A stretch of 64,000 nucleotides of DNA from Octopus bimaculoides (lineage: Eukaryota), in assembly GCF_001194135.2 (NCBI RefSeq), contig NC_068984.1, forward strand, positions 24,609,079 through 24,673,078, read 5' to 3'. Below are positions 15,137 to 63,707 of the stretch, in pieces. The translations under genes and the position numbers were made by a program. The notes beneath the pieces were generated by a model. It made no database searches, was not told the origin of the DNA, and saw only the letters and a program-made list of their open reading frames with translations. Within the stretch, counting starts at the first letter, position 1. Each line of letters opens with the position of its first letter.

Positions 15137-15260
15137 ACCTGTCTGGCAGTGACAGCATCTAAGAAAAGTCAAAATTTAATTTCACATGTTGAAGATTTGA
15201 AAGACTTTAAAAAGTTATTGAGGACAAAAACTAATTTACTTGTGATATTAACTAAAACAG
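15137..15260 (+). CDS. PDIA5: PDIA5 coding exon (first located; phase 0 to 1): TCLAVTASKKSQNLISHVEDLKDFKKLLRTKTNLLVILTKT
   Basis: Acceptor ttctttctag, donor gtatag; 124 nt; end of signal peptide plus start of b domain. Confidence 0.88.
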
Positions 15261-39200: not shown

Positions 39201-42200
39201 TAAGGCATGGTTGTGTAGATAAGAAGTTTGTTTCTTAATCTTAATCATAGGCGTAGGAGTGGCTGTGTGGTAAGTAGCTTGCTTACGAACCACATGGTTC
39301 TGGGTTCAGTCCCACTGTGTGGCACCTTGGGCNNNNNNNNNNNNNNNNNNNNNNNNNNNNNNNNNNNNNNNNNNNNNNNNNNNNNNNNNNNNNNNNNNNN
39401 NNNNNNNNNNNNNNNNNNNNNNNNNNNNNNNNNNNNNNNNNNNNNNNNNNNNNNNNNNNNNNNNNNNNNNNNNNNNNNNNNNNNNNNNNNNNNNNNNNNN
39501 NNNNNNNNNNNNNNNNNNNNNNNNNNNNNNNNNNNNNNNNNNNNNNNNNNNNNNNNNNNNNNNNNNNNNNNNNNNNNNNNNNNNNNNNNNNNNNNNNNNN
39601 NNNNNNNNNNNNNNNNNNNNNNNNNNNNNNNNNNNNNNNNNNNNNNNNNNNNNNNNNNNNNNNNNNNNNNNNNNNNNNNNNNNNNNNNNNNNNNNNNNNN
39701 NNNNNNNNNNNNNNNNNNNNNNNNNNNNNNNNNNNNNNNNNNNNNNNNNNNNNNNNNNNNNNNNNNNNNNNNNNNNNNNNNNNNNNNNNNNNNNNNNNNN
39801 NNNNNNNNNNNNNNNNNNNNNNNNNNNNNNNNNNNNNNNNNNNNNNNNNNNNNNNNNNNNNNNNNNNNNNNNNNNNNNNNNNNNNNNNNNNNNNNNNNNN
39901 NNNNNNNNNNNNNNNNNNNNNNNNNNNNNNNNNNNNNNNNNNNNNNNNNNNNNNNNNNNNNNNNNNNNNNNNNNNNNNNNNNNNNNNNNNNNNNNNNNNN
40001 NNNNNNNNNNNNNNNNNNNNNNTTACAGCATACATGGAACCATAGCTACAAATAACAACATCGCCTTCTTTTGATTGGGATGCAAACAATGACATTGGTT
40101 GACATTTTCTGTTGAAGAATCTTTCGCTTTCTCTGTGCTTTCAAATTCCTCTGGGATAAAAAAAAAAAATCCCTTATTTGAAAAATAGTTAAGGTTTTGC
40201 TACAAGGAGAACCAATACCTGTAAAAATCCTACTTCAATTAGCTTCTATCTGAGCTATGCTTGCATGGAAATACAAACATTAAGCAAAATGAATGAGTGA
40301 ACAGTCAAATGAATAACTGAATGTTCAGTCTGAGACAATATTGTTTGCTACCAGTATTTAGTAGTGGAAAAAAATGAAGCAAGAAAATTTTCTAGAATGA
40401 CTTGGTATTGTTTTGCAGCACTATAAACTCAACTCTTCTAAGTAGAGCAAGCTAGATCAATTTAGCAACCATGTAATTAGCTCCCATGCCGGTGGTATGT
40501 AAAGAGTGCTGGGTTTCATAAAGGCAATGACAAATGACTGAGACCTTTGGCAACATGCTGTGCTTGAGAAGGAAGGGCCATCAGATCAAGTGAAATCGTA
40601 GTTGTAGCAGATACTGATGTCATGCAACTGGCACCCATGCTGGTGGCATGTAAAATCATCCATTACACTCTCAGAGTGGTTGGCATTAGGAAGGACATCC
40701 AGCTATAGAAACCATGCCAAATCAAACTGGATTCTGGTGGAGCCCCTCAGCTTATTAGCTCTGGTCAAACTATCCAACCTATGCCAGCATGGACAAATGG
40801 ATGCTAAATGAAGATGATGATGATAATCTAACTCTTGTCATCTTGATATCCATTGTAGCTAAAGTCAGTCTTAGAAATGAATTCGAATCAAGACACGTCT
40901 ATCCTCTGACATGCTTCCGATCTTTATGATAAGTATTACAAAATTTAATTCATAAATTGCAACCTTTACAATTGAAAGAGAAAAAAGATGAACATTTGCC
41001 AATGTTTCTGTTGTAATTCCTAGAATTGTTTTTAACAATGTAATCTATTTCCTCTACCCTAGGATAGAAACCTTGCTTCTTTCATGCTTGATTTTAAAAT
41101 AAGATGTTCCAAAAAAAAAAAAAAACCCCAAAACAGTCCCATCCCCAAATCACCATAGAAAGTATGGATAAAATATTATTGGGATAAACAGCGAGCCACT
41201 GTGTTTGTTACTTAACTTGGTTAAATTCATTTTCAAATTATCAGTATGTGTCAAATGATTCAAATTCAGACATTGATTTTGATTTAATTTAAAGTTTATT
41301 CATTTTCCATTTGTTCTTTTCCTGGCAGTGGATGATATATATATTGTATGTTAAGAAGGATTCTTTTTCTTTTCTTTTGGAGTATAGTTACATGAAATAT
41401 CTTTCTTCTAAAATGATTTCTTTTGATATCTATTTGTTGTAATTCATAGCTTGTCCTAAGTAGTTATTGTAATTATTATTGATGCTATAATAATTAATAA
41501 ACTGTAGTTAAGTTTCTCTGAAATCAAATACTTTATACATTTAGGGTGTGGACACTGTAAGAAAGCTAAACCAGAATTCACAGAAGCTGCTTTACAATTG
41601 AAAGATGAACCTAAGGTAAGTTACTTTTTCTCTTGTTTAAAACATAATTTTGCAGTTCTATTTCTTTTCGTTTTTATCTGTAATTTTGGAATTTGTAAAT
41701 TACGTAGAAATAGATTCAGTGTAATTAAGATGCTCTGTTTTTGATGAATTGTGTAAGATCAAGTATCATATATGTAAATGTTTATTATATATATATGACA
41801 ACAGTTTTAAATGTACATTACTGACATATTTTACTGATAAAGGAAGAACACTTGTGTGATGGTAATTAGTTACGAACACTACGTTTTCTCTGTATACTGA
41901 TCATTTCTAAGATTTGTCAGCTGAGATGAATGTGCCTTGCTAATAAGATCTAACAAGGCTGAAATATGTCTGTGGCTTCCACCAGTGGACTTTAGAAACA
42001 AGATCCTATCATAATTACATTGATTTTATCTTACAGAAATTTGGATTAGATAATATTATTGGAATTATCTCATTTGCTTGTTGATTTATATTATAAACAC
42101 ATCCAGAATGAATTTTTGTCTTCTAAGTACATGGTTAATTTCAGTTAACTGAAGTTTTTCAACTAATTATATTACATATTCAAGTCTCTGTTGTTTGTAT

Positions 42201-45200
42201 GATAAATTCTTGTGCTGAACTAATGATATTTCTTCAAACTAAAAATTTTATTGAAATAACTTTGGATTATATCATTGAGTACTATCATTATTTCTTTTTT
42301 AGCTTGCTATATGTGCTGTGGACTGCACAGAACATACTTCTTTGTGTACAGCTCATGATGTGAAAGGTTATCCTACCCTGAAGTACTTCAATTATGGCAA
42401 GAACCCACAAGACTACATGGGTGGCAGAACAGTAAGTGTTTTTCTTTTCTTTTGTCGTCTACATACACTGTGGCATTAACAGTGATAGATACAATTTATG
42501 ATTTAATGATTGTACTTGTTTGAGAATATATGAAAATAACTTTCATGCAGAAAATAAATTGTATATAAAGTATGCTTTCTTGTCATTGCCATTATTATTG
42601 TTGTTATTTGCCATCATTGTTATAAACTTTGTTGGCATTGTGATGATGGTAATGATGATTTTTCCATATTGGCATAGATTCGAGAAATATGCTATACAGT
42701 AAATATTATAGCCATATCTGTACCTATATAGTCAAGCTTTTCTTTTATCAGTTTTTAAATGAATGCTTTCTTTTCCTTTCCTAGTTTTTGATAACAAATC
42801 TCTGAAACATTTATTCTCAGGAAAATCTGTTTATTGGATCTAAATTTCCAGTGTGTTTAATAGCCATGAGCTGTTATTATACACCACTGAAAATAGGTTT
42901 TATTGTTTGATACTTCTACTTCTTTATCTTGGGTCGAGCATTATCCTTCACTACCTCCTTCTGACATTGAAATATTGATAAGATGTATGTATGATCCATT
43001 TTGTGCTTCTAATGTTGTGACAACTGCATCTACATTTCTAGACATGATAACTCAAATCTAACTCCACCCGACAATATTTGCTGCTTCCATTTCAGAATAT
43101 GGTAGCTGGTTTTAGGAAAGTTGCTTCAGTTCTCAATATTCTTTAATAGTTTATAGTGAAAATATTTTCCAAGATAAAGTATTCATATGAATTATCCTGG
43201 TTCCTGTCTTTTTCAGACAACAGATTTTGTAAATTTCTTGAAATCTCCAAATGCTCCTCCTACACCAGAGCCAGTTCCTAAGATGTCACCACAAGAAGAA
43301 TTTTGGCTAAAAGAAGTTGGGCCTTCTTTCAAAGATGTCATTTTGTTATCTTCTACTTCATTTGATCACTTTATCAGTGAGAATCCTTCAGCCCTAGTAT
43401 TTTTCTATTCACGTAAGTTCTGTTATTGTCAATAACAACATTTTTCTTATAAATTTAGAAATGTTTGTTTGTTCTTTTAACTCTGGAAATAGTTATCAAG
43501 GCACTATTTTCAATCTTTCATGACTGTCGATATTCATGTTCTCTCCAATGCAGTATGAAAGTATTAAACTCTGCATTACAAGCTAACAAAACATTCCTTA
43601 GCGTTCCTGCTGCTTCTAGTTGTGAGCTGGTACCTCACTCATGGTGCATATTTACAAGTGAATCAGTATGATTTAAGTCTTTTTATTAAGGACACCACTT
43701 AAGGAATATAAATAAGGGAATATAAATCCTTGATTTTCTAGCCAGTAGGTCTGCAGTCTAAAGATTCGGCCTTCTATGACTCTCTCATCATAATTTAGTA
43801 ATGTTAAAAGCATATATTTTTAACTTCCCAACTATTACAACTTACCCTTATAATGTGGGAATGACATGTGCCTCATCTATAGTAAAGCATCTATTCTTGA
43901 CCCTCTGTCATACTTTAGCCTCTCAGCACCTGGCATAAAGCCAATTCCCCTTTCCTAATACCCACCACTTAATAATGCAAGGGCTCTTCCTCTTTACTGT
44001 TCTTTTCGGTCTTGTAACTTGGTGACCTCACTAGTGCTGGTGGCATGAAAAAAAAGCACACAATACACATTGTAAGGTGGTTGGTGTTAGGAAGGACATC
44101 TGGTTGTAGAAAACATGTTATAGCTGACACTGGAGCTCAGCACAGCCTTGCAGCTTGCTGGATCCTGTTAAACTGTTCAACCCAATCCAGCATAGAGAAT
44201 GGACATTAAATGATGATGATAATTTATATAACTTCTATGATATTTAGATAACTTTTATTGTATGCTTGGCATTGCTTTAACAATGGAAATATCATTATAT
44301 TTTATGACAGCTTTCATTTTATTCATGGTTATTACATTAGGTTCTAGTTGAAACACAAGCTTCTTGTTATTATGAACTTCTTGTTATTATTGGTGTGAAC
44401 TGTTCTTTTTACTATTTTCATTGTCTAGTCTATTCTGTCTTTCATCATAGGCAAACGACCTGACACAGAACTTATGAAAGAGTTTTCCATGACAGCAACT
44501 TTCCTTAAGGCTGGAGAGGTAAGCATCTAAAATATTTAATTTAGCTACCATTAATAGTATAGTCGTTATAAGTGATTTCAATTATTGTTGCTAGGCTGAT
44601 ACATTTTGACCCGTTTTGCACTATTGCAGAGATGAAATACTGAATTGACAAGTTAAGCTAGAATGATTAGTTAGATAAGTAATGCTATCAACCATACGTA
44701 CTAACACTACTTCTGTTTGATTAAAAACAGTTGATGTAGTCTCATTAAATAGCTTGTGCTAAGTGAAGGCATGTGGCTTAGTGGGTAGGGTATTCAGCTC
44801 ACAATTGTAAGTTCATGGGTTCGATTCCTGGTGGCACATTGTGTGCTTGAGCAAGACATTTTCACATTGTTCCTGTCCACTTAGCCTGCAAAAATGAGTA
44901 GTATATATATTTCAAAGGGCACATTCTGTATGACACTTGAATCTCCCTAAGAACTACGTTAAGGGTATGCATGTCTGAGGAGCAAGCTGTTCAGTTGATT
45001 AGATCAACTGGAACACTCATCATCATAATCAGTGGAGTGTCAGTTTGCCTTGAATTACAGTATTTTGTTGTCTTATTTTTTTGATCTTCACTTAATCTTT
45101 CACCTATGAAGAACATACAAAGTATATTGGTAATATGTTTAAGTGAACTGAATAAATCTGTTTATTTCTATGTTTAGAGACAAAAAAGTGGCATATTGTC

Positions 45201-48200
45201 TGTTCTTATATTCTAAGTGCAAGTTCTATCGAGCTCGACTTTACCTTTCATCTTTTCGGGATTGATAAAATAAGTACCAGTTATGCACTGGGACTGATGT
45301 AATTAACTACTGGCTGTGTGCTAAAGTTTGAACTCAATATATTTCTTACTCAAAAACTCAACTATTTTGTGACAAATTATAATATTGTTGTCAAAAACAC
45401 CTAAGAATATTAATTATTCCTCAAACCAATTATAAATTCATTTTCTCATCCTTCTTACAGAGCACTGACGTTTTTGCTGCAGTGGACAGATCTGCAGACA
45501 AAGGTTTGGCAGACAAATTTGTTGGGTCAAGATCTCATGTCTGTAAGTTCTTATGTGTATTGTTATATTTTTCATATTGGCATGTTTTGGATGAATTTGC
45601 AAGTCCTGATGTTTGTGTAACAGGAGTAAATAATGTGTACACTTAGTAAAAGCTATTCAAATCATGTAGTTAAGCCATGCTTAATGAAGAATTTAGTGTC
45701 TATGTAGGTCTTCATGAGGACCTTATTGTCAGCTCCACAGTCTATTCTTTCTAGTTTTTAAAGCAACACAGCTGGAGTTCATGATTAGATACTCTTGGAA
45801 ACATATGCTAAGAATCTGATTCTCATTGCAAAATCAGTTGAAGAGTAGCATGAAGAGTTTCAAGTGAGGAAGAATGGTCTAGAGTTCAAAGACCTAAGAT
45901 TCAACATGGCAGATCAAAATTCTAATTAGTAGTGGAGAGTACAAAATAAGGAAAGTGGCCTTGTTTGATATGTGTATGTGTGCATGTGGTAGTGGTGGCA
46001 AACTGAGAATGAATGCTTCCCTGCATTTGGTGAAGAAATACATTCTTTATTTGTGGATTAATAATGCTGTGAATATGGAGATAGATTACCAACACTCTTT
46101 GGTGGAGCACATGTAAATTGTGATTTTTCTACATGAAACCAATGGTGTCATTGTTAATCTACAAATAAGGAATATATATATAGATAGATGGATAGATACA
46201 CACACACACGCAAACTTGACCTGTATGCTTAATACAAAAGAACTCTGACTTATTTACAGGGAACCAGGATTGATTAGCAATAGGGGCAATGAAATCAAAC
46301 AATCAAATTACTGTTCATATTGATTTCTAGAAATAATAGCTAGTTTCTGTTACTTAGGTTATGTTATCAATAGTGGAGGGGAATATAATGAAAGGATAGT
46401 AAGAGGGAGATATAGTTAAAAAAAAAAAAATTGTTGATAGCAGAGTTTTCCTTGTGCAAAAGATAGACTGTGTGAATCATATGCAAGAAACGTGGATGTT
46501 CCATAGTAGTGAGACTTTGGCACTGACTGAAGGACTTGCAGAGGTTAAAGAAAGGAGAATCAATAAGATATGATCTACTGGGTGTACTCTGTTAACTTAC
46601 ATGAAGGAGAAGAGCACAAGTGATCTGAGAGCATAGTCGCATATTGAAACCATTGACTGGTGTATGCAGAAGAGACACCTGCATTGGTAGAGACATCTAA
46701 TGTGAATGGGTGATGAATGTTGGATAAAAAAAAGTGCCATGTACTGATGGTGGAATGTACGTGCAACAAAGGAAGACATGAGAAGAACTGATGAGGACAG
46801 ATCTCAGGCTTCTCAAACAAGGTAACAAAAGATTGTGATGTGTGGTGATAAGGTGTTATTATGCTAGTATTAAAAAAAGGGAGATTGAATTACTGGGGTC
46901 TGTGTTGTTTTATAGCTGGGTACCCATCTGACTACCTGTTATATTTTATAAAGTACTATTGGTATGATTTTTGCTCTAAATTAAGTCGTTAAATGAGAGA
47001 TCCATGTCCAAGAATCTAATAGGGTTGTTGTTGAATAAGTGATAATTTCTAGAACTTTATATCTAAGAATATATCTGTTGAACGTGTGTTAGTATCAAAA
47101 TGTTGTTGACTTGCAAATTCAACATGTTACATCTAATAACAGACATGTTATGTGTAATTGTTGACCATGAGAAAATGTCAATTTAATGACTGATATTCTG
47201 TCACTGCATCCCCTTTCTATCTTTAATTCCAATAATGGTTTAATTCTTAACCATTCTGCTTTCATCTGACTTTTGTTTTATCTTACTCACTACTCACTAA
47301 TATTTGTATAATTTAAGACACTTTATTGAATCTAATTCAATGTTTCACTATTCTGAGTTGAAATTCTGTTCAGAATCAGTCTACTTTTCATCCCCTGTCA
47401 ATAAACTAAGTACCAGTTATATATTGAGATATATACAATTAAATACCCACTCCTTGTAAAACTTAATTAGATCTATTCTTAAAGAGGTGTCATGATTCAA
47501 TGTTTTATTCTATGCTAATGAAAGTGTATATAATAATAGAATGTTGAATTGTTTATCTTAAGAAAATTTCATCTATTTGTTTTTTTTTTCATTTTTAAAT
47601 CTTTTGTTTTAACTTACTCTTGTTTTTCTTTTTCTACTTTTTCCTTTCGATTTATAGTGAAATATTTCAAGTGAGTATTCTATTATTTTTCTATTTACTG
47701 ACTTTAACAGTATGTACTTCCGTCCTGCTCTTAAACCACTGCACAACTATTTATTTAGAAATTGTATTTAAATACCTATCTTTTTGCCACATTGTTGATA
47801 ATCTATAATATTTTTCTGATTCCATTTATGTAACACTATTATAATTATGGAGCAAAATGCCAGACATAATCTATTATACTCTCAACATTAATGATATTTG
47901 AAAACAATTGACAGATAAACTATGGAACTAAATCAAAGTTATAATGTATTACAGATACATTTATTTTATATAATTTTTATGACATTTGATTGGAGAATAA
48001 ATATTTCAATTTAAGAGTCATGTAAACATATATTTATTGATATTTTGTTTTTAGATTCCACAGCTGAGTGTGGCAGCTACTGTAGTTTGTTCGCTAGGTC
48101 TGGGGTTCAAATCTTACCAAATACATTTTTCTCTGATATGAAAGTACAGCATATTACCAACATAGGCATACTATAACAGAATATTATTATGTATCGATTA

Positions 48201-49226
48201 TCCTTCCTACTATAGGTACAAGGCCTGAAATTTTGTGGGAAGGAGATCAATGTAATTGACTGACCCATCCCCTTCAAAATTTGCTGGCCTTGTGTCAAAA
48301 ATTAGAAAGAATTATATATGGATTATGTCTTTGATTTCATTTTATATTTGAGATTGTTTAAAGCATTTATTACATACATTATTCATTCAATGTTTTATGC
48401 AATAATTTTAATAACATAATCATTAAGTGATGGAAGCTAACTAGTATTTTTCCATGGACAATTGTGCATAGTTCTTTCTAGAGTATGCCCACTTTTTGAT
48501 ATGGAAATAAAAATAACAACCCTCAAAGAAGAAGAGGTGACAAATGTATAACAAAGAGTATTGTTTTCAAAGGTACTCTCTCCTAAGACTGCATCTTCAG
48601 TTCTACCTATATGGATTTTTACAACATGTCAAGAATCAAAATCTTTCAGTAAAAAAAAAATACAAATTCAAAAGAAATTATGTATTTCATTTGTCTTGGG
48701 AAGGTCATTACACCAATAATATTAACACACACACCAGTTATAGATTATATCTGTTGTTTTATTTTGACACATAAACATGCTAATTTGTTTGATTTTTTTT
48801 CTTTTAGAAATGGAGAAGCAATGTCAGAATGTATGGGTAAAACTGTTAAAGAACTGTCAGAATTTATGATGAAGTAAGTAGAATTTTGTGTATTGTGATT
48901 GGCCCATATCAACAGGTCTGATCATTTAAACATACAAATTTTCTGTAGCATGATTGGAATGGTTCTGCAAAATTTCGATATTTGCATATATGTATTGTTA
49001 CAACTGTAGGTTTAATAAATAGCCGAGTGTCCACTCCATTTTTACCACCTGGCACTCATTCAAGAAATGAGAGTAGCCTTGTACGGTCAGCTTGAGGAGG
49101 CTGAAGCAAGAGAAGAATTTTGTGTCTTATCTGGCAAAAGAGCTCAAAAGCTGCGGAAAGTTTTGAACTTATGGTTTTTATGTTTCAAAAATAGTCTCCT
49201 CCTCCTCCTCCTCCTCCTCCTCCTCC

Positions 49227-49282
<56 letters not shown>

Positions 49283-49955
49283 NNNNNNNNNNNNNNNNNN
49301 NNNNNNNNNNNNNNNNNNNNNNNNNNNNNNNNNNNNNNNNNNNNNNNNNNNNNNNNNNNNNNNNNNNNNNNNNNNNNNNNNNNNNNNNNNNNNNNNNNNN
49401 NNNNNACCACCACCACCACCACCACCACCACCACCACCACCACACAAGAAGAGTTGTTTTCTATGATTTCAGCATTTGTCTTCCATGTTGGCATGAAATA
49501 GACAGTTTGACAGTACCATCTCAACTAGCAGGATTGTTACACTATCTTTAGATTTACTCAGAGGGTTCCCTTTATTGTATCTCTTACTGTAGAACTTTTG
49601 TGTTTTAAGATTTCTTGAATTACCGATACAATCCCTCCAATGGGCTTCTATACACTTTACATCTATCCAATTTCACTTACAAGGTATGTGTTAGTTCAAG
49701 GACATGGGAAATTACATTTTGTCCAAGATACCATACAATGAAATTGAACCCAGGACCTCATGGTTGTGAAGCAAACTTCTTAACCATTCAGCCATATTGT
49801 GCCTACAAGCACATTTTGTGGACCAAAGAGAAAATGTATCCATGAGGAGAGAAGTAGAGATAAGAAAGGGTCAGTTACACTCTGAAAAGCTACCAAATAA
49901 AACTGAAGAAAAGACACCAGAACAAAGCAACTCACAAAAACAATGAAAGAAACAG

Positions 49956-50044
<89 letters not shown>

Positions 50045-50054
50045 NNNNNNNNNN

Positions 50055-50116
<62 letters not shown>

Positions 50117-51698
50117 GTGAGACTTTGTAAACTGCCAACATTGTCTGTTGTCAGATTTGAATCATTAAGTTGTTATTTTTAGCCTTGAATCAGACCAGTT
50201 GAACAAACCAATAATCAAATATCTTATTGATCCCATTTGTCCCATCTTATTTTCAGGCATAACATTTTTTAAGACTATATTATCCAATGTGTTCTTTTTA
50301 AAACCAATAAGATATGGTTTATGGGGGTGTACTTTTGCCTTAAACTTGTGTTATTTTATATACATTTGTTATCATCGATTTAGTAGATGTGTATGTTTGC
50401 ACAATCTACACTCATGCATTTACTGATCACCAAACCTCAGAAACAGCTATAAAGGATTGCTTTGGATTTTCCTCTTTTGCATCTGATGTTAGTCTCTGGG
50501 TATTTGATATCAACCTACCTATGAAGAACCACTAAGAACTTTCTTTTTCTATTTAATCATATTTATATACACATCTTTATACCTAATTTAGAAATGATTT
50601 TGATACCATTTGCAGCTGTCTGTGCATTTTTATTTTATTTTACTTTCATTAGCTGCTATTTTGTTGCAGATTGAATGACCATACAAAAGCTTTGACTCAG
50701 ATTATTCATGGACTATTCAGTTACTGCATTGGTGTGACCCAATCCTACTCTGGGCTAGAATTTTTTCTGTTTATTATTTTCAAGGCTTTCATTTTTTTTT
50801 TTCTTGTGTGAAAATATTAGAACAGCTATTGCTGGAGAAAAAGAAACCAGTTTTCTACACAATGGCTTTGTGCCACAAACTTATAGGAAAGTTATTTTGA
50901 AATGACAAAGAAAGGCTATCATCAGGAGTCCATATTTGTTTATTCACTTATAAGGATTTCAAGATTTTAGTCTGTTGCTTATTTAAGTAATTATATTGAA
51001 TGGGTAAGTTTTTCTTCTGAAGCAAAGGGTATTAACTCAGCACGTAAGGTTACACCAGTGTGTGTGTGTGTGTGTGTGTACACACTCACAAAAGCTACTA
51101 GAGACTGGTCAACAAACCCTTGAGAGGGTTGGCGCTGGAAGGCCATATGTGTGGTAGTAGATTTCAGCTCCTTATCTCTGGAAAGACTCAAAAGTGGTTG
51201 TCAGAGAATTTCTATGATTTCACCAGCCCTAATTTCTGGTCTCATAATACTTTTGATTGTAATTCCATGGATTGAGAAAGACACCAACCACACTTTCTTC
51301 AATACCAGAGCTGAGCTTGTGATCAAGAGCAAAGGGGTGTTTGAAGATTTCCATACTTCTATGGATCAGATGGAATTTATTGAGACAGATTTTCTGTGGC
51401 CAGTTGCCTTTCCTGTCACCAACTACTCACCTGTTTCCAAGTAAGGTAATATTTTCCCTTGGTAGACACGTTGTTGTAGAATATTGGAAATGAATGACAC
51501 TGCTTGTATATCAATGACAGTTATTTTGTGATGTCAGGACAAGCAAACACAAACATGCTTACACCATCCTTCAGTTTCTGTCTACCAAATCCACTCACAA
51601 GGCTTGGGTTGGGTTGGTGCTATAGTAGAAGACATTTGTCCAAGGTGCTGCACAGGGGGACTGAACCCGAAGCTATGTAGAATCAAACCATGGCTTGC

Positions 51699-51735
<37 letters not shown>

Positions 51736-54700
51736 NNNNNNNNNNNNNNNNNNNNNNNNNNNNNNNNNNNNNNNNNNNNNNNNNNNNNNNNNNNNNNNNN
51801 NNNNNNNNNNNNNNNNNNNNNNNNNNNNNNNNNNNNNNNNNNNNNNNNNNNNNNNNNNNNNNNNNNNNNNNNNNNNNNNNNNNNNNNNNNNNNNNNNNNN
51901 NNNNNNNNNNNNNNNNNNNNNNNNNNNNNNNNNNNNNNNNTTCCACCTAGCCTAGGAGGAGTTTGTCTCCCCCTCGCAAACATAAGGACACAGGAAATGT
52001 GTCAAGGCCGACAGGAGGTGGTCCAGCTTCCTAGGGCTAAATAACAGTAGTATATTCCCTTATTGGGACTGTCACGTTAAGTTGGCAGTATACAACTACT
52101 TTATCGCATCACTACTGCTTAAGTTTCTCTGAGAGATTTAGAAATGTATTATTTTTAATATATATATATATATATAAAATCATCATAACCGAGGGCACTG
52201 AAGGAGTCACTTTCAGTGCCCTCAGTGCCACAGGATCTGCCTTTATCATATCAGTCTTGTCAGCCACAGCCACATCTGCTCCCATGCAAAACAATGTACT
52301 GGATGTAGAGGAGGATAAATGTCTTGGATTGACACTGTTATCACTTTTGATCGGCTGTCATAAGCAAGTAAACATCATCATAGATTTAATGTTCATTGTC
52401 CCATGTTTGTATGAGCTGGACAAAGTCTATTGAGGCAGATCCTCTGTGACTGGATCTCTTGTTGCTAAGCCATTCCTGTTTCCATGGAAGGTAATATCCC
52501 CCCCTCCTCCATGGCCTGATATGTTGAAGTGGATGTTAAAACGATTATTATGATGATGATAATGATGGAAGTTAACCCCAGCACTAGACTAATACTTATT
52601 TTAAGTTCTGATAAGATGTATTACAATTACCTACAGCTGTTCCATGTTATTGTTCATGCTTATATATTTCATGTTTATACGGAAGCAACAAGTTTACTGA
52701 ATATACTTAAAAGGTGATTAAGGTAGCAAGCTGGCTGAATTGTTAGCATGCTTGGCAAAATGCTTTGCTGCATTTCATCTATCTTTATGTTCTGAGTTCA
52801 AATTCCGCTGAAGTTGACTTTGCCTTTCATGGTCAATAAATTAAATACCAGTGAAATACTGGGGTCAAGGTAATTGATTAGTGCCCTCCCCATAAGATTT
52901 CAAACCTTGTGCCTTTAGTAGAAAGGATTATTAAAAGGTAGTGGTAGTGAAAATGGTTTGTGGTATTGTGTTCCTTTAAATGCTGTTTTCAAATCTTACT
53001 AGGGGTCAGTAAAATACTACTAATATTCTGGGGTTAATTTTCATCAATTGTTCCTGTCCCTCAAAGTGACCTTGTGTATTTGTTGGCCAGGTAAAATCGT
53101 GTGCCAGAGAAAATGCTTTACAGTATTATTTTCTGGCTCTTTATGTTCTGAGTTCAAATCCTGCTGAGGTCAACTTTGCCTTTCTTTCCTCCAGAGTCAA
53201 TAAAATAAAGTACGGTCAAATGCTTGGTTCACTGGTATCAACTACTTGTCTGCCCTCAAAATTGCTGGTCTTGTATCTGACAGAATCATTTGCATGTCAG
53301 ATGAAATGCTTTGCAGCATTTCATTTATCTTTATTTACTGAGTTCAACTCCTGCCAAGGTCAACTTTGCCTTTCATTCTTTCGGGGTCAATAAAATAAGT
53401 ATCAGTTGAGCACTGGGGTTGATGTAATTGACTAGCCTCCTTCCCCCAAATTTCAGGCTTTGTGCTTGTAGTCGAAAGAATTATTATTACTGTCATTATT
53501 ATTAACAACATCAACAGTTGTGGATGGCAGAATTGGTAGAGTGGCAAAATGTCTTGCAGTATTTAGTTACTTCCCTTGGACATTCTAATTTCTAATTTTG
53601 CCGAGTTAACTTTGCCTTTCAAAGCTCAGTTGTTAATGTGTAAGGAGGATATTCATAAATTCTTATACCTAGTTCTTACCTATGTAACATGCAATGTTGA
53701 ATACATTATTGCATTGTAAATAATATTTGCTATAACTTAGAGTAAGAGAGGAAAGCAATAGGCAGAGTTTGTTCAAAACAATTATACCATCTCTAGAATT
53801 ATTACATAGTGTTGTTAGATATTACTTGAATATAAATCATATCTTCAATAACTTTGGATAAGATGAAAAACTGTAGGAGTGGACCAAAGCTATTTGAAAA
53901 TTAATTTAATTAGTGATCCTTCCCTAATCTTTGTAAATTTTGTACAGAATTTATTGAATGTTCTTTTTTAGTTTGAAGAGTAATGAATGTTTGCTATATA
54001 AATGTGTTTACTTTGGCTTTGATAAATGTTTGTTAAAGTAATTGTCTCATTCATACTTGAGAAATGTCATTGTTGGCTTCATTAACTTCATGTGTGTTAG
54101 TTTTCATTTAAAAGCCATGCATTTAAAGGTTGAATCTGTTATGCTTTGTGAGATGAACTTTTCCCTGAATGTCAGTTGGCTTCATTCTACATGAATGGTC
54201 AGAAAGTTCTGTAAAGTGAAATTGTCTCCTCTAACTTTAGGTGTTCATTTTATTTCTTGATAGTTTTCTACATGATATTTCTTAGTAGTTCTGTTTGCTG
54301 TGCTTATTATGCTCTTACTAATTTAATTGTATTAAACATCTTTTCATGAACTCAACTGATACTAATGGGGTTTTCTTCTGTTTTTGTTGGACATTCAGAT
54401 ATTGTTTTCAAAGGTAACATCTACAGATAATTCAGCTGTTATGATATATGTTCCTTTCTTATTTATTTATCACAGGATTTTCGAGCGAGATCGTTGCCAG
54501 TGCCCCTGGACTGGCTTGTGCGGGTGGCACATAAAAGACACCGTTTCGAGCGTGGCCGTTGCCAGTATCGCCTGACTGGCCTTCGTGCAGGTGACACGTG
54601 AAAGTACCTACTACACTCTCTGAGTGGTTGGCGTTAGGAAGGGCATCCAGCTGTAGAAACTCTGCCAAATTTAGATTGGAGCCTGGTGTTGCCATCCGGT

Positions 54701-55105
54701 TTCACCAGTCTTCAGTCAAGTCGTCCAACCCATGCTAGCATGGAAAGCGGACGTTTAAACGAAACATATATACATTCAGCATGTATCTTAAAGATTTCCT
54801 TAAATGTATTTTTTTAAATATATTTTTATTATTATTATTGTCTGTTAATGATAACTTCTGATATATTTTCTTTCTCAGCCCATTGGCAGATAATTGGCAC
54901 TCATCATCATCCAGTAACACTTATAACCCAAATGCAGCTAACTTTCAGAAAACATTATCTAAAAACACACATGTCTTTGTGGCGTTCCATGTCAGTAAAT
55001 GCTCCAACTGTGAACGGATTAAAAATGAATTTCTCACAACTGCAGATGAAATGGTGAAACATAAAAGTTTCGCTTTTGCGGCTGTTAATTGTGATTTTAA
55101 TTCAG
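15137..55105 (+). CDS. PDIA5: Protein disulfide isomerase A5 (PDIR)-like gene, 22 coding exons traced, 5'- and 3'-incomplete; domain order b-a1(CGFC)-a2(CGHC)-a3(CGHC)-a4(inactive)-a5(CSNC, partial)
   Basis: Manual splicing gives one open frame of 2065 nt with GT-AG introns and matching phases. The translation resembles human PDIA5 as recalled: DFKKLLRTKTNLLV ~ DLKKLLRTRNNVLV; FLQDPKGDIPWDEDPEA ~ [58 protein letters not shown]. Several exon sizes (88, 46, 93, 61, 68, 92, 137) match recalled vertebrate PDIA5 exons. Confidence 0.93.
16554..17794 (-). mobile_element. Near full-length decayed mariner (DD34D) transposon with about 30-bp TIRs
   Basis: Minus-strand pieces: HTH region (SARNINAVY...CQRWFQKF...GRS...TVEELAEKLG), FLDRIVTGVEKWVLYKN, and HQDNA...HPPY...APSDYHLFRSLQNHL with 34 residues between the catalytic D residues. 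TIRs ttgggtcatctcataaataatgcg and cacattatttatgagatgatccaa; TA at the left flank, CA at the right; frameshifted. Confidence 0.92.
18007..18094 (+). CDS. PDIA5: PDIA5 exon (phase 1 to 2): (E)KSLSSILPVIQTTAEEMKGKATLITIDC(S)
   Basis: Acceptor ttgtttttcag, donor gtaaat; 88 nt. Confidence 0.9.
19333..19398 (+). CDS. PDIA5: PDIA5 exon (phase 2 to 2): VAKKLCRKLKMSSNSFDIKHY(H)
   Basis: Acceptor ataattttag, donor gtaagt; 66 nt; KKLCRKLK ~ RKLCKKMK. Confidence 0.9.
20040..20625 (-). mobile_element. Decayed CR1/L2-like LINE 3' fragment
   Basis: Minus-strand ITISEDLS*QTHINKV...FLFKARKYF...LLTIYKVQ...INYCS...LQPLVHRCAISSL. Confidence 0.6.
20665..21030 (+). mobile_element. Family A SINE
   Basis: gcagatatggctgtgtggttaagaagcttgc...(GT)n...cagcatggcc. 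Confidence 0.7.
21506..21551 (+). CDS. PDIA5: PDIA5 exon (phase 2 to 0): DGEFNRNYDRKLTVK
   Basis: Acceptor ttttatcag, donor gtaagt; 46 nt; ~ DGAFHTEYNRAVTFK. Confidence 0.9.
21870..22130 (+). mobile_element. Family C SINE with internal about 63-bp tandem units
   Basis: Repeated gtggcatg(t/c)aaaaagcacc...gccagt...ctgactggccc units, then actctcagagtggttggtgttaggaagggcatccagctgtagaaac. Confidence 0.7.
22203..22479. mobile_element. Palindromic (foldback) MITE of about 275 bp
   Basis: Nested inverted matches: actttaggttagttaaaatat/atattttaactaacctaaagt, aaggcaaattc/gaatttgcctt, ctttcttatggtaaaa/ttttaccataagaaag, caccatatctgccc/gggcagatatggtg. Confidence 0.8.
22682..22774 (+). CDS. PDIA5: PDIA5 exon (phase 0 to 0): SMIKFLQDPKGDIPWDEDPEAENIVHVESEQ
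   Basis: Acceptor ttccttttcag, donor gttaga; 93 nt. Confidence 0.93.
25370..25740 (+). mobile_element. Family A SINE
   Basis: gcaggcatggctgtgtagtaagaagcttgc...aaaacaagtaaaaga. Confidence 0.75.
26419..26479 (+). CDS. PDIA5: PDIA5 exon (phase 0 to 1): KLNKMLKKQRLPMLLMFYAP(W)
   Basis: Acceptor tttgtttcag, donor gtaagt; 61 nt. Confidence 0.93.
27657..28010. repeat. Complex CA-rich minisatellite (CACACATG/CATGCA variants)
   Basis: Seen directly; source of the spurious H/T and C/V-rich ORFs. Confidence 0.95.
29490..29557 (+). CDS. PDIA5: PDIA5 exon (phase 1 to 0), a1 active site: (W)CGFCKRLKPEFSAAATELKGKA
   Basis: Acceptor aatttgtag, donor gtgagt; 68 nt; CxxC = CGFC. Confidence 0.95.
30678..30769 (+). 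CDS. PDIA5: PDIA5 exon (phase 0 to 2): ILAGLDADNPQFFQLRLQYNITGFPTIFYF(E)
   Basis: Acceptor atacttacag, donor gtaagt; 92 nt; GFPT cis-Pro loop. Confidence 0.93.
31702..31770 (+). CDS. PDIA5: PDIA5 exon (phase 2 to 2): NGKSLFQYGGENTRSGIVKWMS(N)
   Basis: Acceptor atgttttgcag, donor gtaagc; 69 nt. Confidence 0.92.
33680..33920 (+). mobile_element. RTE-clade LINE RT fragment
   Basis: KATGSLGILSEMLK...IISCYK(G)KRDAPERNNYRDIKLMD*VMKVTERI. Confidence 0.7.
34069..34205 (+). CDS. PDIA5: PDIA5 exon (phase 2 to 1): [45 protein letters not shown](W)
   Basis: Acceptor atatttttcag, donor gtatgt; 137 nt. Confidence 0.93.
34260..35830 (-). mobile_element. Possible heavily decayed Penelope-like element
   Basis: Weak motifs only: IGIP, CTRLIAI...LSICTASDF, IQIPAPDG; many stops and frameshifts. 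Confidence 0.3.
36025..36092 (+). CDS. PDIA5: PDIA5 exon (phase 1 to 0), a2 active site: (W)[22 protein letters not shown]
   Basis: Acceptor cattttatag, donor gtaatt; 68 nt; CGHC. Confidence 0.95.
37157..37251 (+). CDS. PDIA5: PDIA5 exon (phase 0 to 2): IEGALAAIDSTQESQISERFKIKGFPTVKYF(R)
   Basis: Acceptor tacctacag, donor gtaagt; 95 nt. Confidence 0.93.
37476..37541 (+). CDS. PDIA5: PDIA5 exon (phase 2 to 2): NGEYMWDFNERKASDIVSFMK(D)
   Basis: Acceptor gtgttttcag, donor gtaagt; 66 nt. Confidence 0.92.
38432..38571 (+). CDS. PDIA5: PDIA5 exon (phase 2 to 1): [46 protein letters not shown](W)
   Basis: Acceptor ttctatttcag, donor gtaagc; 140 nt; polyproline linker. Confidence 0.94.
41545..41615 (+). 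CDS. PDIA5: PDIA5 exon (phase 1 to 0), a3 active site: (W)CGHCKKAKPEFTEAALQLKDEPK
   Basis: Acceptor tacatttag, donor gtaagt; 71 nt; CGHC. Confidence 0.95.
42303..42431 (+). CDS. PDIA5: PDIA5 exon (phase 0 to 0): LAICAVDCTEHTSLCTAHDVKGYPTLKYFNYGKNPQDYMGGRT
   Basis: Acceptor tttcttttttag, donor gtaagt; 129 nt; ~ IACAAVDC...VKGYPTFHYYHYGK...RT. Confidence 0.94.
43217..43412 (+). CDS. PDIA5: PDIA5 exon (phase 0 to 1): end of a3, linker and start of extra domain a4: TTDFVNFLKSPNAPPTPEPVPKMSPQEEFWLKEVGPSFKDVILLSSTSFDHFISENPSALVFFYS(R)
   Basis: Acceptor gtctttttcag, donor gtaagt; 196 nt; repeats the Pro-linker-W...V..L....FD.F......LVFFY pattern of the earlier domains. Confidence 0.9.
44451..44518 (+). 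CDS. PDIA5: PDIA5 exon (phase 1 to 0), degenerate active-site exon of a4: (R)KRPDTELMKEFSMTATFLKAGE
   Basis: Acceptor ttcatcatag, donor gtaagc; 68 nt, same size and phases as the a1/a2 WCGxC exons; aligns without gaps to [23 protein letters not shown]. Confidence 0.85.
45461..45542 (+). CDS. PDIA5: PDIA5 exon (phase 0 to 1): [27 protein letters not shown](L)
   Basis: Acceptor ccttcttacag, donor gtaagt; 82 nt; FAAVD...LADKF ~ LAAVD...LAERF. Confidence 0.87.
46440..46815 (+). mobile_element. RTE-clade LINE 3' fragment
   Basis: RLCESY...MFHSSETLALTE...IETIDWCMQKRHLHW...MGDECWIKKC...KGR. Confidence 0.65.
47658..47670 (+). CDS. PDIA5: PDIA5 13-nt microexon (phase 1 to 2): (L)KYF(K)
   Basis: tttatag|TGAAATATTTCAA|gtgagt. 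It is required to restore frame between the 82-nt and 66-nt exons, encodes the conserved KYF strand, and 82+13 = 95, the size of the equivalent a2 exon. Confidence 0.82.
48808..48873 (+). CDS. PDIA5: PDIA5 exon (phase 2 to 2): NGEAMSECMGKTVKELSEFMM(N)
   Basis: Acceptor tttttcttttag, donor gtaagt; 66 nt, same size and phases as the a2 exon NGEYMW...SFMK. Confidence 0.87.
49196..49443. repeat. Compound (CCT)n(CAT)n-gap-(ACC)n microsatellite
   Basis: Seen directly; interrupted by Ns at 49283-49405. Confidence 0.9.
49959..50113. repeat. Compound (TC)n(GT)n-N10-(GA)n microsatellite
   Basis: Seen directly. Confidence 0.9.
52720..53625 (+). repeat. Second head-to-tail cluster of about five family B SINE copies
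   Basis: Repeated ctgagttcaaa...gtcaactttgcctt...gtcaataaa core near 52790, 53150, 53340 and 53600, plus a degenerate unit near 52980. Confidence 0.75.
54478..54762 (+). mobile_element. Family C SINE upstream of the a5 exon
   Basis: ctctgagtggttggcgttaggaagggcatccagctgtagaaactctgcc...catggaaagcggacgtttaaacg. Confidence 0.8.
54879..55105 (+). CDS. PDIA5: PDIA5 exon (phase 2 to 1), extra domain a5: PLADNWHSSSSSNTYNPNAANFQKTLSKNTHVFVAFHVSKCSNCERIKNEFLTTADEMVKHKSFAFAAVNCDFNS
   Basis: Acceptor attttctttctcag, donor gtaagt; 227 nt; thioredoxin pattern with CSNC and AAVNC. Confidence 0.87.
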
Positions 55106-55224
55106 GTAAGTTTATTATTTTCTAAATATATCCCACAGGTTTTTTTAATACAAATTCTTGTTTATGTGAAATAGGTAACTGTTGATATACACTTATAAAG
55201 TATTAATATCAATCAGAATATAAT

Positions 55225-55582: not shown

Positions 55583-56159
55583 CATCTTCCACTGAGATCT
55601 TTGTCAAACAATCATCCTTCTCAAAATATTGCTGTTTACAATTTCATATTCTGTTGTCATCAAAATTGACTTTCCTCATATCTTTTAACTCTTGTCTAAT
55701 TTTTCCATTAATATTATCAACTTACTGTTTAAACTCTATTGTCATGACATTCTAACTCTCTTTAGTGACCATTGGTATTGTCTCTGTGAAGTGAAATTTA
55801 TTTAAATATGTATGTAATATGTGGAGGTGCATAGCTTAGTGGTTAGGGTGTTAGCATCATGATCGTAAGATTGTGGTTTCGATTCTTGGACTGGGCGACG
55901 TGTTCTTGAGCAAAACACTTCATTTCACTCAGCTGGCAAAAATGAGTAACACTGCGATAGACTGGCGTCCCGTCCAGCTGGGGAACACATACACCATTGA
56001 AACCGGGAAACCGGGCCAGGCTTTAAAAGGGTGCATTTATTGATTTTCATGTATGTAATATATATAGTCAGTGCTCTGTTAATAAGTTTTGGGGGCTGAG
56101 AAGGGGAGAGCTTTCATTCTTGTTAATAAAAATTATTGTGAGTGATAAAAGTCATGCCA

Positions 56160-56594
56160 GAAGTGATAAAAATCAAACAGTCAGTCAACATCATGGTGTT
56201 TGGAGTGATCACTAATGATGGTGCCATTCATCTTCCCACATGGTCTCAGACTCAACACGGAGGCCTACATCAAGTGCCTGGAGGAAGTAGTGCTGTCCTG
56301 GGTTAAGAGGATGGCTGCTGGAAGACCCTACATTTGGCAGCAGGACCCTGCACCATGCCACACAAGCAGGAGAACCCAATCATAGCTGTCAAACAATTTC
56401 TGTGACCACATCATCCCTAACATCTGGCTGCCTAACTCTTCAGACTGAAACCCCCTTCATTATTATGTGTCGAGAACAGTTGAGCAAAAGGTCAACAAAA
56501 CTCCTTGTAACACCAAAGATGAGCTAAAGGCAAGGATTATGGCAGCATTCACCAACTTAAACAAGAAGACCATCCAGAAGAGTTGCAGGAGATT
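56160..56594 (+). mobile_element. maT-family (DD37D) transposase remnant
   Basis: IMVFGVITNDG...FPHGLRLNTEAYIKCLEEVVLSWVKRMAAGRPYIWQQDPAPCHTSRRTQS*LSNNF...IWLPNSSD*NPLHYYV...NTKDELKARIMAAF. 37 residues from QQD to the NPL(D to H) position; in-frame stops. Confidence 0.85.
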
Positions 56595-56787
56595 AGGTGC
56601 ATACTTTGATTAACTGCATTGCTTTTTGTTGAGATAAAGTAAAATAAGCTTTCCGTTCAAAACTGGACATTTTATTCTTAATGACCTGCCATGCCTGATC
56701 ACTAAATCCACAAGTTTTTCCTATCTTTTCTGTGTTTATTTTCTCTTATTCCTTTCTGTTGAAGCGCATAGGCTCGAAATGTAAAGG

Positions 56788-57544
56788 NNNNNNNNNNNNN
56801 NNNNNNNNNNNNNNNNNNNNNNNNNNNNNNNNNNNNNNNNNNNNNNNNNNNNNNNNNNNNNNNNNNNNNNNNNNNNNNNNNNNNNNNNNNNNNNNNNNNN
56901 NNNNNNNNNNNNNNNNNNNNNNNNNNNNNNNNNNNNNNNNNNNNNNNNNNNNNNNNNNNNNNNNNNNNNNNNNNNNNNNNNNNNNNNNNNNNNNNNNNNN
57001 NNNNNNNNNNNNNNNNNNNNNNNNNNNNNNNNNNNNNNNNNNNNNNNNNNNNNNNNNNNNNNNNNNNNNNNNNNNNNNNNNNNNNNNNNNNNNNNNNNNN
57101 NNNNNNNNNNNNNNNNNNNNNNNNNNNNNNNNNNNNNNNNNNNNNNNNNNNNNNNNNNNNNNNNNNNNNNNNNNNNNNNNNNNNNNNNNNNNNNNNNNNN
57201 NNNNNNNNNNNNNNNNNNNNNNNNNNNNNNNNNNNNNNNNNNNNNNNNNNNNNNNNNNNNNNNNNNNNNNNNNNNNNNNNNNNNNNNNNNNNNNNNNNNN
57301 NNNNNNNNNNNNNNNNNNNNNNNNNNNNNNNNNNNNNNNNNNNNNNNNNNNNNNNNNNNNNNNNNNNNNNNNNNNNNNNNNNNNNNNNNNNNNNNNNNNN
57401 NNNNNNNNNNNNNNNNNNNNNNNNNNNNNNNNNNNNNNNNNNNNNNNNNNNNNNNNNNNNNNNNNNNNNNNNNNNNNNNNNNNNNNNNNNNNNNNNNNNN
57501 NNNNNNNNNNNNNNNNNNNNNNNNNNNNNNNNNNNNNNNNNNNN
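56788..57544. other. Assembly gap (others at 6150-6454, 29675-29774, 39333-40022, 51736-51940, 59262-59342)
   Basis: Runs of N. Confidence 0.99.
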
Positions 57545-57680
57545 AAATAAGTTATCCATGTTATACATGATTTTTTTCTTTTAATTTTAAATGTTAAGAA
57601 TTTCTTTTCCACTGGCATAAGATAGAGCATAGATAAGAGAGTATATTAGAGTATCTATTTATCGTCGTCGTCGTCATCCT

Positions 57681-59171
57681 TTAACGTCCGCTTTCCATGC
57701 TAGCATGGGTTGGACGATTTGACTGAGGACTGGTGAAACCGGATGGCAACACCAGCCTCCAATCTGATTTGGCAGAGTTTCTACAGCTGGATGCCCTTCC
57801 TAACGCCAACCACTCAGAGGGGTTGATTAACTCTACTAAAACGCTTCTTTGCAAATTTCTGGGCTTATAATCAATATAAGAAATTAATGCTGTGAGAAAC
57901 TGGCAGAAATGATGAATACATTTAAAAACATTACAAGGAACAAAAGTTTAAATTTCCAGTCATGTCATGTATATATATAGAAAAAGAAACATTTTGGGTA
58001 TATATATGAATGTATGTATGCATTGCATTGCTGTGGTTAAGAAGTTCACTTTCCAGCCACATGGTTTTGGGTTCACTCCATCTGCACAGTCCCTTGGGCA
58101 AGGTCATGTAAGTGGATTTAGTAGAAAGAATGCTGTGTGCATCTATATATATAATGTCTGTATGTGTGTGTTACCATGACGTTATGTGATAGATATACAA
58201 TGAGCATTGTAGAGGAAACCTCATAGCTAATTATGTGTGATGTGATTTTAAGCTTACCATGAACATGCATGTATCTTACCTGTTACTCTGCAGTTCTTGC
58301 CATTTGTGTGAATGTTGATGTATTTTTGTTTGGTACAAAAGCATATAATTACTGACAAAAAAAAGAAAGCGGGGGAGAGAAATGATGATGTTTATGCCTT
58401 CTTTTAAGGATATAAGAGACATGACTTAAATGGAATAGCTAACAAGAACTGCAACTGAGTCACCTCTGCAACTCATCTCATGGACTGTGAACTTATCTCC
58501 TTTTCAAGGGCATTCTATATATTATCTGTGTGATGTCTTAAACTAAACATGGGGTCATTAAAAAAAAAAAAAAAAAATTCATTGAGATGGATTTATCTTG
58601 AATGAATTGATTCTTGTATATTACTGAAACTCATTTTAGCAAGCCCAAAGTGGACAAGTCAATGAGGGAGCCTCTATGTGGTATCTTGCCCTGTAAGAAA
58701 TAGTAGCGGAATCTCCTTTCAGTTATACTCTGACATTTTTCAACATGACAGGGCACATTATATTATCATTATATAACCATTCCAAATACATTATCTGAAC
58801 AAAAGATGGAATAGTCATGGCTAGAATATTTTTGATTGTAGATCTGCTCTGTCTTCTAAACAACAACAAGCATGAAGTTGGTGATGACATGACTGGAAAT
58901 TTAAACTTTTGTTCCTTGTAATGTTTGAAATGTATTCATCATTTCTGCCAGTTTCTCACAGCATTAATTTCTTATATTGATTATAAGCCCAGAAATTTGC
59001 AAAGAAGCGTTTTAGTAGAGTTAATCAACCCCTCTGAGTGGTTGGCGTTAGGAAGGGCATCCAGCTGTAGAAACTCTGCCAAATTTAGATTGGAGCCTGG
59101 TGTTGCCATCCGGTTTCACCAGTCCTCAGTCAAGTCGCCCAACCCATGCTAGCATGGAAAGCGGACGTTAA
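57681..59171. repeat. Inverted repeat with 287-bp arms (57681-57967 and 58885-59171)
   Basis: Each arm is about 147 bp of non-SINE sequence joined to an identically truncated family C SINE 3' half; only a handful of mismatches between arms. Confidence 0.9.
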
Positions 59172-61533: not shown

Positions 61534-61557
61534 TATATAAATATATATATATATATA

Positions 61558-63451: not shown

Positions 63452-63452
63452 T

Positions 63453-63707
63453 GGAAGCCTAGTACTTATTCTATCGGTCTCTTTTGCCGAACCGCTAAGT
63501 TACGGGGACGTAAACACATCACCATCGGTTGTCAAGCGATGCTGGGGGAACAAACACAGACACACAAACATATACACACACATACATATACATATATACA
63601 ATGAGCTTTGGTCGGCCCGAGGCTATAGTAGAAGACACTTGCCCAAGGTGCCACGCAGTGGGAATGAATCTGGAACCATGTGGTTGGTGAGCAAGCTACT
63701 TACCACA
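63453..63707 (-). mobile_element. tRNA-derived SINE (family A) at the truncated 3' end of the CR1 LINE
   Basis: Matches the family A copies at 5780-6145, 20665-21030 and 25370-25740 (gtacttattctatcggtctcttttgccgaaccgctaagttacggggacg...gtgccacgcagtggg). Confidence 0.8.

Follow-up and report, generated by a model that had tools for sequence, protein, structure and literature searches.

The stretch analysed here, called the window below, comprises 64,000 nucleotides (nt) from Octopus bimaculoides (contig NC_068984.1, positions 24,609,079 to 24,673,078 of the forward strand) and is the locus of the gene PDIA5, which lies on the plus strand. The DNA is AT-rich (~33% G+C) and contains ten runs of N. 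Stop-free stretches of the plus strand hold a series of peptides resembling protein disulfide isomerase (PDI), and the joined canonical exons, when used as a query, find as their best match the O. bimaculoides "protein disulfide-isomerase A5 isoform X1" (XP_052822919.1, P0001; 714 amino acids (aa)), followed by Argonauta hians and then by many invertebrate PDIA5-like proteins. In tblastn this RefSeq protein aligns to the window with 100% identity inside exon bodies, and a splice-aware walk along the plus strand, restricted to GT-AG introns, gives 22 exons whose joined translation is identical to it from residue 22 to the end. Exon 1, expected to encode the signal peptide, was not found, peptides from the first 21 residues having no counterpart on the plus strand of the window; the RefSeq N-terminus, MANTLANTRLALLIFVVFVTTCLAVTAS, is hydrophobic by sequence. 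A single plus-strand transcription unit encodes a non-catalytic b domain followed by a1 (CGFC), a2 (CGHC), a3 (CGHC), a4, in which the active site is missing, and a5 (CSNC); Table 1 lists the exons.

By sequence comparison the gene is assigned to the PDIA5 (PDIR) orthologue group. Among the best 120 matches, every one that bears a functional name is labelled PDIA5 or a PDI, the others being "hypothetical", "unnamed protein product" or "Thioredoxin", and the octopus a1, a2 and a3 domains share 58-63% identity with the domains at the same position in 40 non-cephalopod six-domain orthologues, compared with 30-50% for domains at other positions. A 191-aa query covering only the part of the protein beyond a3 returned no match at E <= 0.001 despite its 100% identity in P0001, which is a miss of the word pre-filter and not an absence; a longer query recovered the matches.

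The initial annotation of this DNA had proposed that the gene does not end after a3, where the coding sequence reaches YMGGRT, and that six more in-frame exons encode a proline-rich linker, a complete fourth thioredoxin fold and most of a fifth. The splice walk finds exactly these six exons directly after 42303-42431, in agreement with XP_052822919.1, with 43217 as the true first acceptor position and 55105 as the last base before the donor GTAAGT. A four-domain ending of the vertebrate type is not encoded, there being no stop codon after a3 and the frame running on through all six exons, which are ordinary constitutive coding exons of PDIA5. Among them, those of a4 repeat the plan of the catalytic domain a2: the exons of a4 measure 196/68/82+13/66 nt and those of a2 137/68/95/66 nt, with the same phases, so that the second extension exon has the length and phase of the exon carrying CGHC in a2. 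The sole change of exon plan from a2 to a4 is a new intron that splits the 95-nt exon into 82 and 13 nt, and this accounts for the 13-nt microexon. The microexon, which has strong splice signals, is kept in O. sinensis (L001 74573-74585) and in Argonauta hians (L003 44679-44691). In O. sinensis the lengths and phases of the extension exons are identical, the sixth exon again being 227 nt long, while Argonauta shares the structure with one codon less in two of the exons (193 and 224 nt, the latter being the homologue of the sixth); both species have one further last exon of 140 nt. The O. vulgaris model CAI9720811.1 (P0125) lacks the microexon and ends in SRSHVCKFL by intron read-through.

Table 1. 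Positions of PDIA5 exons, assembly gaps, collinear blocks and repeats in the window (AF2, AlphaFold2 model; HMM, family hidden Markov model; L001, O. sinensis sequence)
Feature	Position	Strand	Evidence or remark
PDIA5 exons 2-6: end of putative signal peptide, b, start of a1	15137-15260, 18007-18094, 19333-19398, 21506-21551, 22682-22774	+	splice walk reproduces P0001
PDIA5 a1 exons, CGFC	26419-26479, 29490-29557, 30678-30769, 31702-31770	+	splice walk, HMM, active-site reading
PDIA5 a2 exons, CGHC	34069-34205, 36025-36092, 37157-37251, 37476-37541	+	splice walk, HMM, active-site reading
PDIA5 a3 exons, CGHC, ending YMGGRT in phase 0	38432-38571, 41545-41615, 42303-42431	+	splice walk, HMM, active-site reading
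Extension exon 1: end of a3 (TTDFVNFLKS), proline-rich linker, extra helix, a4 strand-helix-strand up to FFYS	43217-43412	+	acceptor tttttcag/ACAACA, donor ATTCAC/gtaagt; 100% match to P0001 residues 492-558
Extension exon 2: a4 "active-site" exon, (R)KRPDTELMKEFSMTATFLKAGE, without cysteine	44451-44518	+	splice walk, alignment; 68 nt
Extension exon 3: a4, STDVFAAVDRSADKGLADKFVGSRSHV; SRSH instead of cis-proline motif G[YF]PT	45461-45542	+	splice walk, alignment
Extension exon 4: 13-nt microexon, (L)KYF(K), split codons	47658-47670	+	AG/TGAAATATTTCAA/GTGAGT
Extension exon 5: final strand and helix of a4, NGEAMSECMGKTVKELSEFMM	48808-48873	+	splice walk; AF2 strand 614-619, helix 624-632
Extension exon 6: linker and first part of a5 (strand-helix-strand-helix-strand), KCSNC, up to AAVNCDFNS	54879-55105	+	splice walk, HMM; consensus donor GTAAGT at 55106
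Three assembly gaps	49283-49405, 50045-50054, 51736-51940		all within the single intron 48874-54878
Gap placed around the last exon (140 nt plus stop; O. sinensis DLCITEKVKDYPSFKLYKNGKFSQNYSGNNQKNSFVKFLKSFVKEEL*)	56788-57544	+	757 N; synteny with L001
Block matching L001 75900-76197	48673-48969		synteny
Block matching L001 77138-77636	50101-50574		synteny
Block matching L001 78170-78977	50571-51353		synteny
Block matching L001 80388-81052	52838-53501		synteny
Block matching L001 81431-82406	53501-54474		synteny
Block matching L001 82738-83100	54764-55130		synteny
Mariner-type transposase remnant	16634-17651	-	PF17906 (HTH_48), E 4.5e-12
LINE-like element, fragmented	61541-63600	+	PF14529, E 6e-7; PF00078, 18.6 bits
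SINE-like repeat copies	10613, 12918, 22071, 37728, 39054, 40670, 54618, 55447, 57661 (-), 58900, 59343		core ~150 base pairs

Assembly gaps and the last exon

The intron between the fifth and sixth extension exons contains three assembly gaps. The junction 48873/54879 is in frame, the exon end AA and the exon start C giving AAC (Asn), the ungapped O. sinensis intron aligns before and after the gaps in unchanged order and orientation, and neither the O. sinensis nor the Argonauta protein has additional residues at this point. These gaps thus leave the coding reading intact and, in the absence of extra residues in the two relatives, no coding exon is hidden between 49283 and 51940.

The end of the gene is affected by a further gap. 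The RefSeq models of O. bimaculoides (XP_052822919.1 (X1), XP_052822920.1 (X2) and the older XP_014784453.1) are identical to the window exons from residue 22 and all hold the six extension exons, but they differ from the expected protein in ending AAVNCDFNSGKFIIF* (GKFIIF), reading past the donor at 55106 as far as 55122. At the corresponding point the proteins of O. sinensis (X1/X2, XP_036358400.1 and XP_029635494.1) and Argonauta hians (P0002) go on with D(L/I)CITEKVKDYPSF and finish FLKSF(V/L)K(E/Q)EL; unlike the O. bimaculoides models they are complete, their 140-nt last exon ending KEEL in O. sinensis and KQEL in Argonauta. A tblastn search of the readable window with these two C-termini recovered neither the last exon nor its endoplasmic reticulum (ER) retention signal, giving only cross-matches to a3 and a1. 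In O. sinensis the last exon occupies L001 85360-85499, 2.28 kb after the a5 exon and between two blocks that flank the large gap in the window (L001 83867-84632 matches 56049-56785, and L001 85666-85787 matches 57545-57662), so that its O. bimaculoides counterpart falls in the gap at 56788-57544. The GKFIIF ending is accordingly an intron read-through and an assembly artefact, caused by the true last exon falling in a gap, and the true O. bimaculoides C-terminus is very probably of the KEEL type.

Six domains and their distribution in animals

A family hidden Markov model (HMM) built from 19 a-type domains of four invertebrate PDIA5 proteins finds six domain matches in P0001, the sixth cut by the gap, and six complete domains in O. 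sinensis, whose full a5 scores 72 bits (Table 2). The part of a5 present in the window amounts to the first 60% of the domain. An AlphaFold2 model built on an alignment of 45 sequences (mean confidence score (pLDDT) 89) gives a4 (residues 532-632) the thioredoxin order strand-helix-strand-helix-strand-helix-strand-strand-helix seen in a1-a3, with block pLDDT of 85-97, and assigns an extra helix (516-531) to the linker; what is present of a5 takes up the initial strand-helix-strand-helix-strand. The b domain is likewise predicted to adopt a thioredoxin fold, and has no CxxC but a cysteine pair in IDCSVAKKLC. The linker, the complete a4 fold and the partial a5 proposed by the initial annotation, which had also suggested modelling the structure, are therefore all borne out, as is its combination of three canonical active sites, one dead domain and one CSNC domain, although the a1 site is strictly CGFC and not CGHC. 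Of the four CxxC sites in the protein, three are in a1-a3 and one in a5, whereas a4 lacks the active-site cysteines, the cis-proline and the loop arginine.

Table 2. Domains of the octopus PDIA5 protein, with the ratio of non-synonymous to synonymous substitution rates (dN/dS) between Octopus and Argonauta
Domain	Residues	Family HMM	Active site	cis-Proline position	dN/dS
b	32-137	26 bits			0.20-0.23
a1		118 bits	WCGFC	GFPT	0.11-0.12
a2		150 bits	WCGHC	GFPT	0.14-0.15
a3		160 bits	WCGHC	GYPT	0.07-0.08
a4	530-634	37.0 bits, E 2e-11, profile positions 5-110	SRKRPDT, no Cys; GKT replaces loop-arginine motif GR(S/T)	SRSHV	0.27-0.29 (~40 synonymous, 56 non-synonymous changes)
a5	646-705 (fragment)	29.5 bits, E 5e-9, stops at profile position 65 of 110	KCSNC	in gap; DYPS in O. 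sinensis	0.23

The same architecture is widespread. In a survey of the best 120 matches plus cluster members (127 sequences), six domains are counted in 50 proteins, five in 70 and an apparent seven in 5. Six-domain proteins of 750-810 aa with KEEL/KDEL ends are annotated in the bivalves Crassostrea, Mactra, Mytilus, Mya, Dreissena and Ruditapes, the gastropods Patella, Littorina, Babylonia, Conus, Aplysia and Pomacea, the brachiopod Lingula, the annelids Owenia, Capitella, Ridgeia and Lamellibrachia, and in hemichordates, echinoderms, cnidarians and amphioxus (Branchiostoma); arthropods and Priapulus have five domains. Like the octopus protein, those of Crassostrea gigas (X1), Lingula anatina, Patella caerulea, Owenia and Lytechinus consist of b and five a-type domains with proline-rich linkers, and they carry an extra cysteine pair in a3 and a5. 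In cephalopods, a4 is of an a2-like type and a5 of an a3-like type with the extra cysteine pair (AVNC...C), and in complete orthologues the ER-retention signal stands only after a5, with none after a3. In Crassostrea gigas, isoform X2 (P0054, 640 aa) lacks exactly one catalytic domain, a2, compared with X1 (P0004, 763 aa), which suggests that domain number in PDIA5 may vary by alternative splicing in some molluscs.

Human PDIA5 resembles the octopus protein in that a non-catalytic b domain at the N-terminus precedes a tandem of catalytic ones, in the structural cysteine pair of b and of the last catalytic domain, and in KEEL-type retention, and comprises, in line with the domain count of the initial annotation, b and three catalytic domains (CSMC, CGHC, CPHC) in 519 aa (PMC9868663). 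It differs in stopping, with only three a-type domains, where the octopus protein runs into a4. By parsimony, the six-domain form is ancestral to cnidarians and bilaterians, and the vertebrate (four) and arthropod (five) forms are shortened. The human a' domain is presumably the counterpart of invertebrate a3. Outside PDIA5, the best match to a4-a5 among solved sequences is the a0-a tandem of ERp72/PDIA4 (PDB 3IDV; two domains aligned, E 1.2e-8), and the best fold match to the whole AlphaFold2 model is ERdj5 (PDB 3APO, 5AYK, 5AYL; E 8e-35), with ERp57 and PDI also matching. The fold search returns generic multi-thioredoxin ER proteins and yields nothing more specific, and its TM-scores stay low (0.15), since the way the domains are placed relative to one another cannot be compared; ERp72 and ERdj5 share with octopus PDIA5 a tandem of thioredoxin folds and an oxidoreductase role in the ER, but belong to different families with different domain orders.

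It is very likely, given these data, that this O. bimaculoides gene is orthologous to the ancestral six-domain PDIA5 of animals and encodes a thiol-disulfide oxidoreductase of the ER lumen. Several observations weigh against this. The Pfam profile PF00085, put forward in the initial annotation as a check on the extra domains, recognises the a5 fragment (28.4 bits; 66 bits for the full O. sinensis a5) but gives a4 alone 12.2 bits, under the cut-off of 23.5. A comparison of a4 and a5 across phyla, also foreseen there and carried out by identity, yields no clear positional assignment: the mean identity of cephalopod a4/a5 to the a4/a5 of other phyla is 25-32%, and the top matches split between a2 and a4 and between a3 and a5, so that per-domain identity reveals only the two types and does not discriminate positional orthology. 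As identity alone cannot assign these domains, their orthology is judged from where they lie, from the linker and from their exon plan and type. The splice junctions in turn rest on RefSeq models, conservation and the transcript of one relative, and the terminal exon, unseen in this assembly, is placed by synteny. Finally, comparing O. bimaculoides with O. sinensis gives a4 a dN/dS of ~1.15, a value that depends on just 3.5 synonymous changes; substitutions between the two Octopus species being too few, the comparison with Argonauta was used instead.

The distal domains in cephalopods

The domains beyond a3 have diverged strongly in cephalopods. The a4 site is absent, among the 127 sequences, only in the octopods (O. 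bimaculoides, O. sinensis, O. vulgaris and Argonauta) and in two RNA-seq assemblies, P0010 and P0020, which have CVGC in a5, are the closest non-octopod relatives (62-64% identity) and are probably decapodiform cephalopods. O. sinensis PDIA5, with 652 of 688 aligned residues identical (~95%), and the Argonauta protein have the same dead a4 and the same CSNC in a5. In non-cephalopod six-domain proteins, a4 has WCGHC in nearly all cases (CKHC in P0037, CPHC in P0023), whereas the dipeptide of a5 varies (CGHC, CGYC, CPHC, CPKC, CQYC, CEAC). The a4, and usually the a5, of the invertebrates compared above keeps WCGHC, G[YF]PT and the loop arginine, none of which is left in octopus a4; octopus a5 reads KCSNC. 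In Branchiostoma belcheri (P0091) the a5 site is lost, with FYKKELQKYK instead of FYAPWCGHCK and REEL kept, and this independent case means that a catalytic site has been lost from a distal domain more than once.

Between Octopus and P0010, a4 and a5 are 38% and 37% identical and a1-a3 64-79%, and between cephalopods and oyster the figures are 34-36% for a4/a5 versus 57-72% for a1-a3; oyster and Lingula share 63% in a4 and 47% in a5. Within octopods, a4 is the fastest domain between Octopus and Argonauta (66%, against 77-88% for a1-a3). On these sequence comparisons, a4 and a5 evolve faster in the cephalopod group. Such divergence could mean that a4, and perhaps a5, is a decaying and dispensable remnant on its way to loss, as in vertebrates and arthropods, a view in keeping with the disappearance of the active site, cis-proline and loop arginine from a4, its score under the Pfam cut-off, its rate of change and the ratio of ~1.15 between the two Octopus species. 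Between Octopus and Argonauta, however, the dN/dS of a4 and a5 lies in the range of the functional b domain (Table 2), so that both are held by purifying selection at about that level and are not decaying pseudo-exons. The frame, five splice-site pairs and the 13-nt microexon are intact in three genera, the AlphaFold2 fold of a4 is well packed, and the retention signal downstream of a4 and a5 means that their exons must be read through in frame. Decay of these domains is therefore improbable.

Still less probable is an addition to a four-domain PDIA5 that is specific to octopuses or molluscs, as the initial annotation had allowed in presenting the extension as a novel feature beyond the canonical form. 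The four domains of the human protein and the strong divergence of cephalopod a4/a5 from oyster would agree with it, but six-domain orthologues ending (K/R)(D/E)EL exist in many phyla, and the phyletic spread shows that the extension is not lineage-specific. The initial annotation had itself held that the same form already annotated across molluscs would take away the novelty; it is so annotated, in many other phyla as well and in the RefSeq models of the species itself, and the novelty falls away. Least credible of all is a second, tandem-duplicated PDI-like gene mis-fused to PDIA5, which the a2-like a4, the a3-like a5 with its AVNC...C pair (as an internal a2-a3 duplication would leave) and the abnormal GKFIIF end might suggest, since exon 43217 opens with the final helix of a3 (TTDFVNFLKS) and so cannot be where a protein begins, the passage from a3 to a4 contains neither a start codon nor a signal peptide nor a stop, phases are continuous, a3 has no retention signal after it, the structure is common to three octopod genomes, and a single intronless contig of 2663 nt, the source of P0010 (L002, run SRR30931884), covers all six domains and RDEL in one open reading frame.

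With the six-domain orthologue as the preferred reading, the state of a4 and a5 may be explained by a remodelling of b-a-a-a-a-a into b-a-a-a-b*-a* in cephalopods, in which a4 became a second non-catalytic, still selected module and a5 acquired unusual sites, CSNC in octopods and CVGC in P0010 and P0020; this is put forward tentatively, at somewhat short of even chances. In functional terms, a1-a3 would form, reduce and isomerise disulfides by way of their CxxC sites, and a4 would most likely be b-type-like, acting as a spacer or substrate-binding module. The a5 domain is probably still redox-active, as CxxC and cis-proline are kept, with a redox potential likely to be shifted by the lack of the preceding tryptophan, the Gly-His dipeptide and the loop arginine.

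Repeats at the locus and wider meaning

Several mobile elements accompany the gene (Table 1). A remnant of a Mos1/mariner-type transposase, its frame in at least two pieces, sits in the intron between exons 15137-15260 and 18007-18094, and a fragmented element resembling a long interspersed nuclear element (LINE), with several frame shifts, lies downstream of the gene and retains an endonuclease domain and a weak reverse-transcriptase match. A repeat resembling a short interspersed nuclear element (SINE) is present in at least eleven copies, mostly in PDIA5 introns, with 73-100% identity to the copy at 58900-59260. Two stretches of 334 base pairs, 58927-59260 and 59343-59676, are 99.7% identical and flank an 81-N gap (59262-59342), and a 96% inverted copy of this stretch follows right after the large gap, at 57661-57952; these repeated stretches round gaps look like assembly duplication rather than biology.

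The six-domain architecture is already known in annotation and is the usual invertebrate form, and the finding carries little weight as a discovery, public annotation already containing the exons, the protein and its relatives; no paper describing invertebrate PDIA5 architecture or a4/a5 remodelling was found within the limited collection searched. What remains of interest is that a4 has been inactivated specifically in cephalopods, together with two errors of annotation: the C-terminus cut short in O. bimaculoides and the microexon missed in O. vulgaris. The O. bimaculoides RefSeq models, being without the end of a5 and the retention signal, could mislead analyses of localisation or domains. 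Where human PDIA5 is taken as canonical, its four-domain form is by parsimony the derived one. If the remodelling in cephalopods is true, the C-terminal half of their protein forms a non-catalytic-then-catalytic pair like the b'-a' end of classical PDI, which would possibly change its substrate range. The loss of the a4 site, confined to cephalopods, provides a small natural experiment in how a PDI domain turns from catalytic to non-catalytic.

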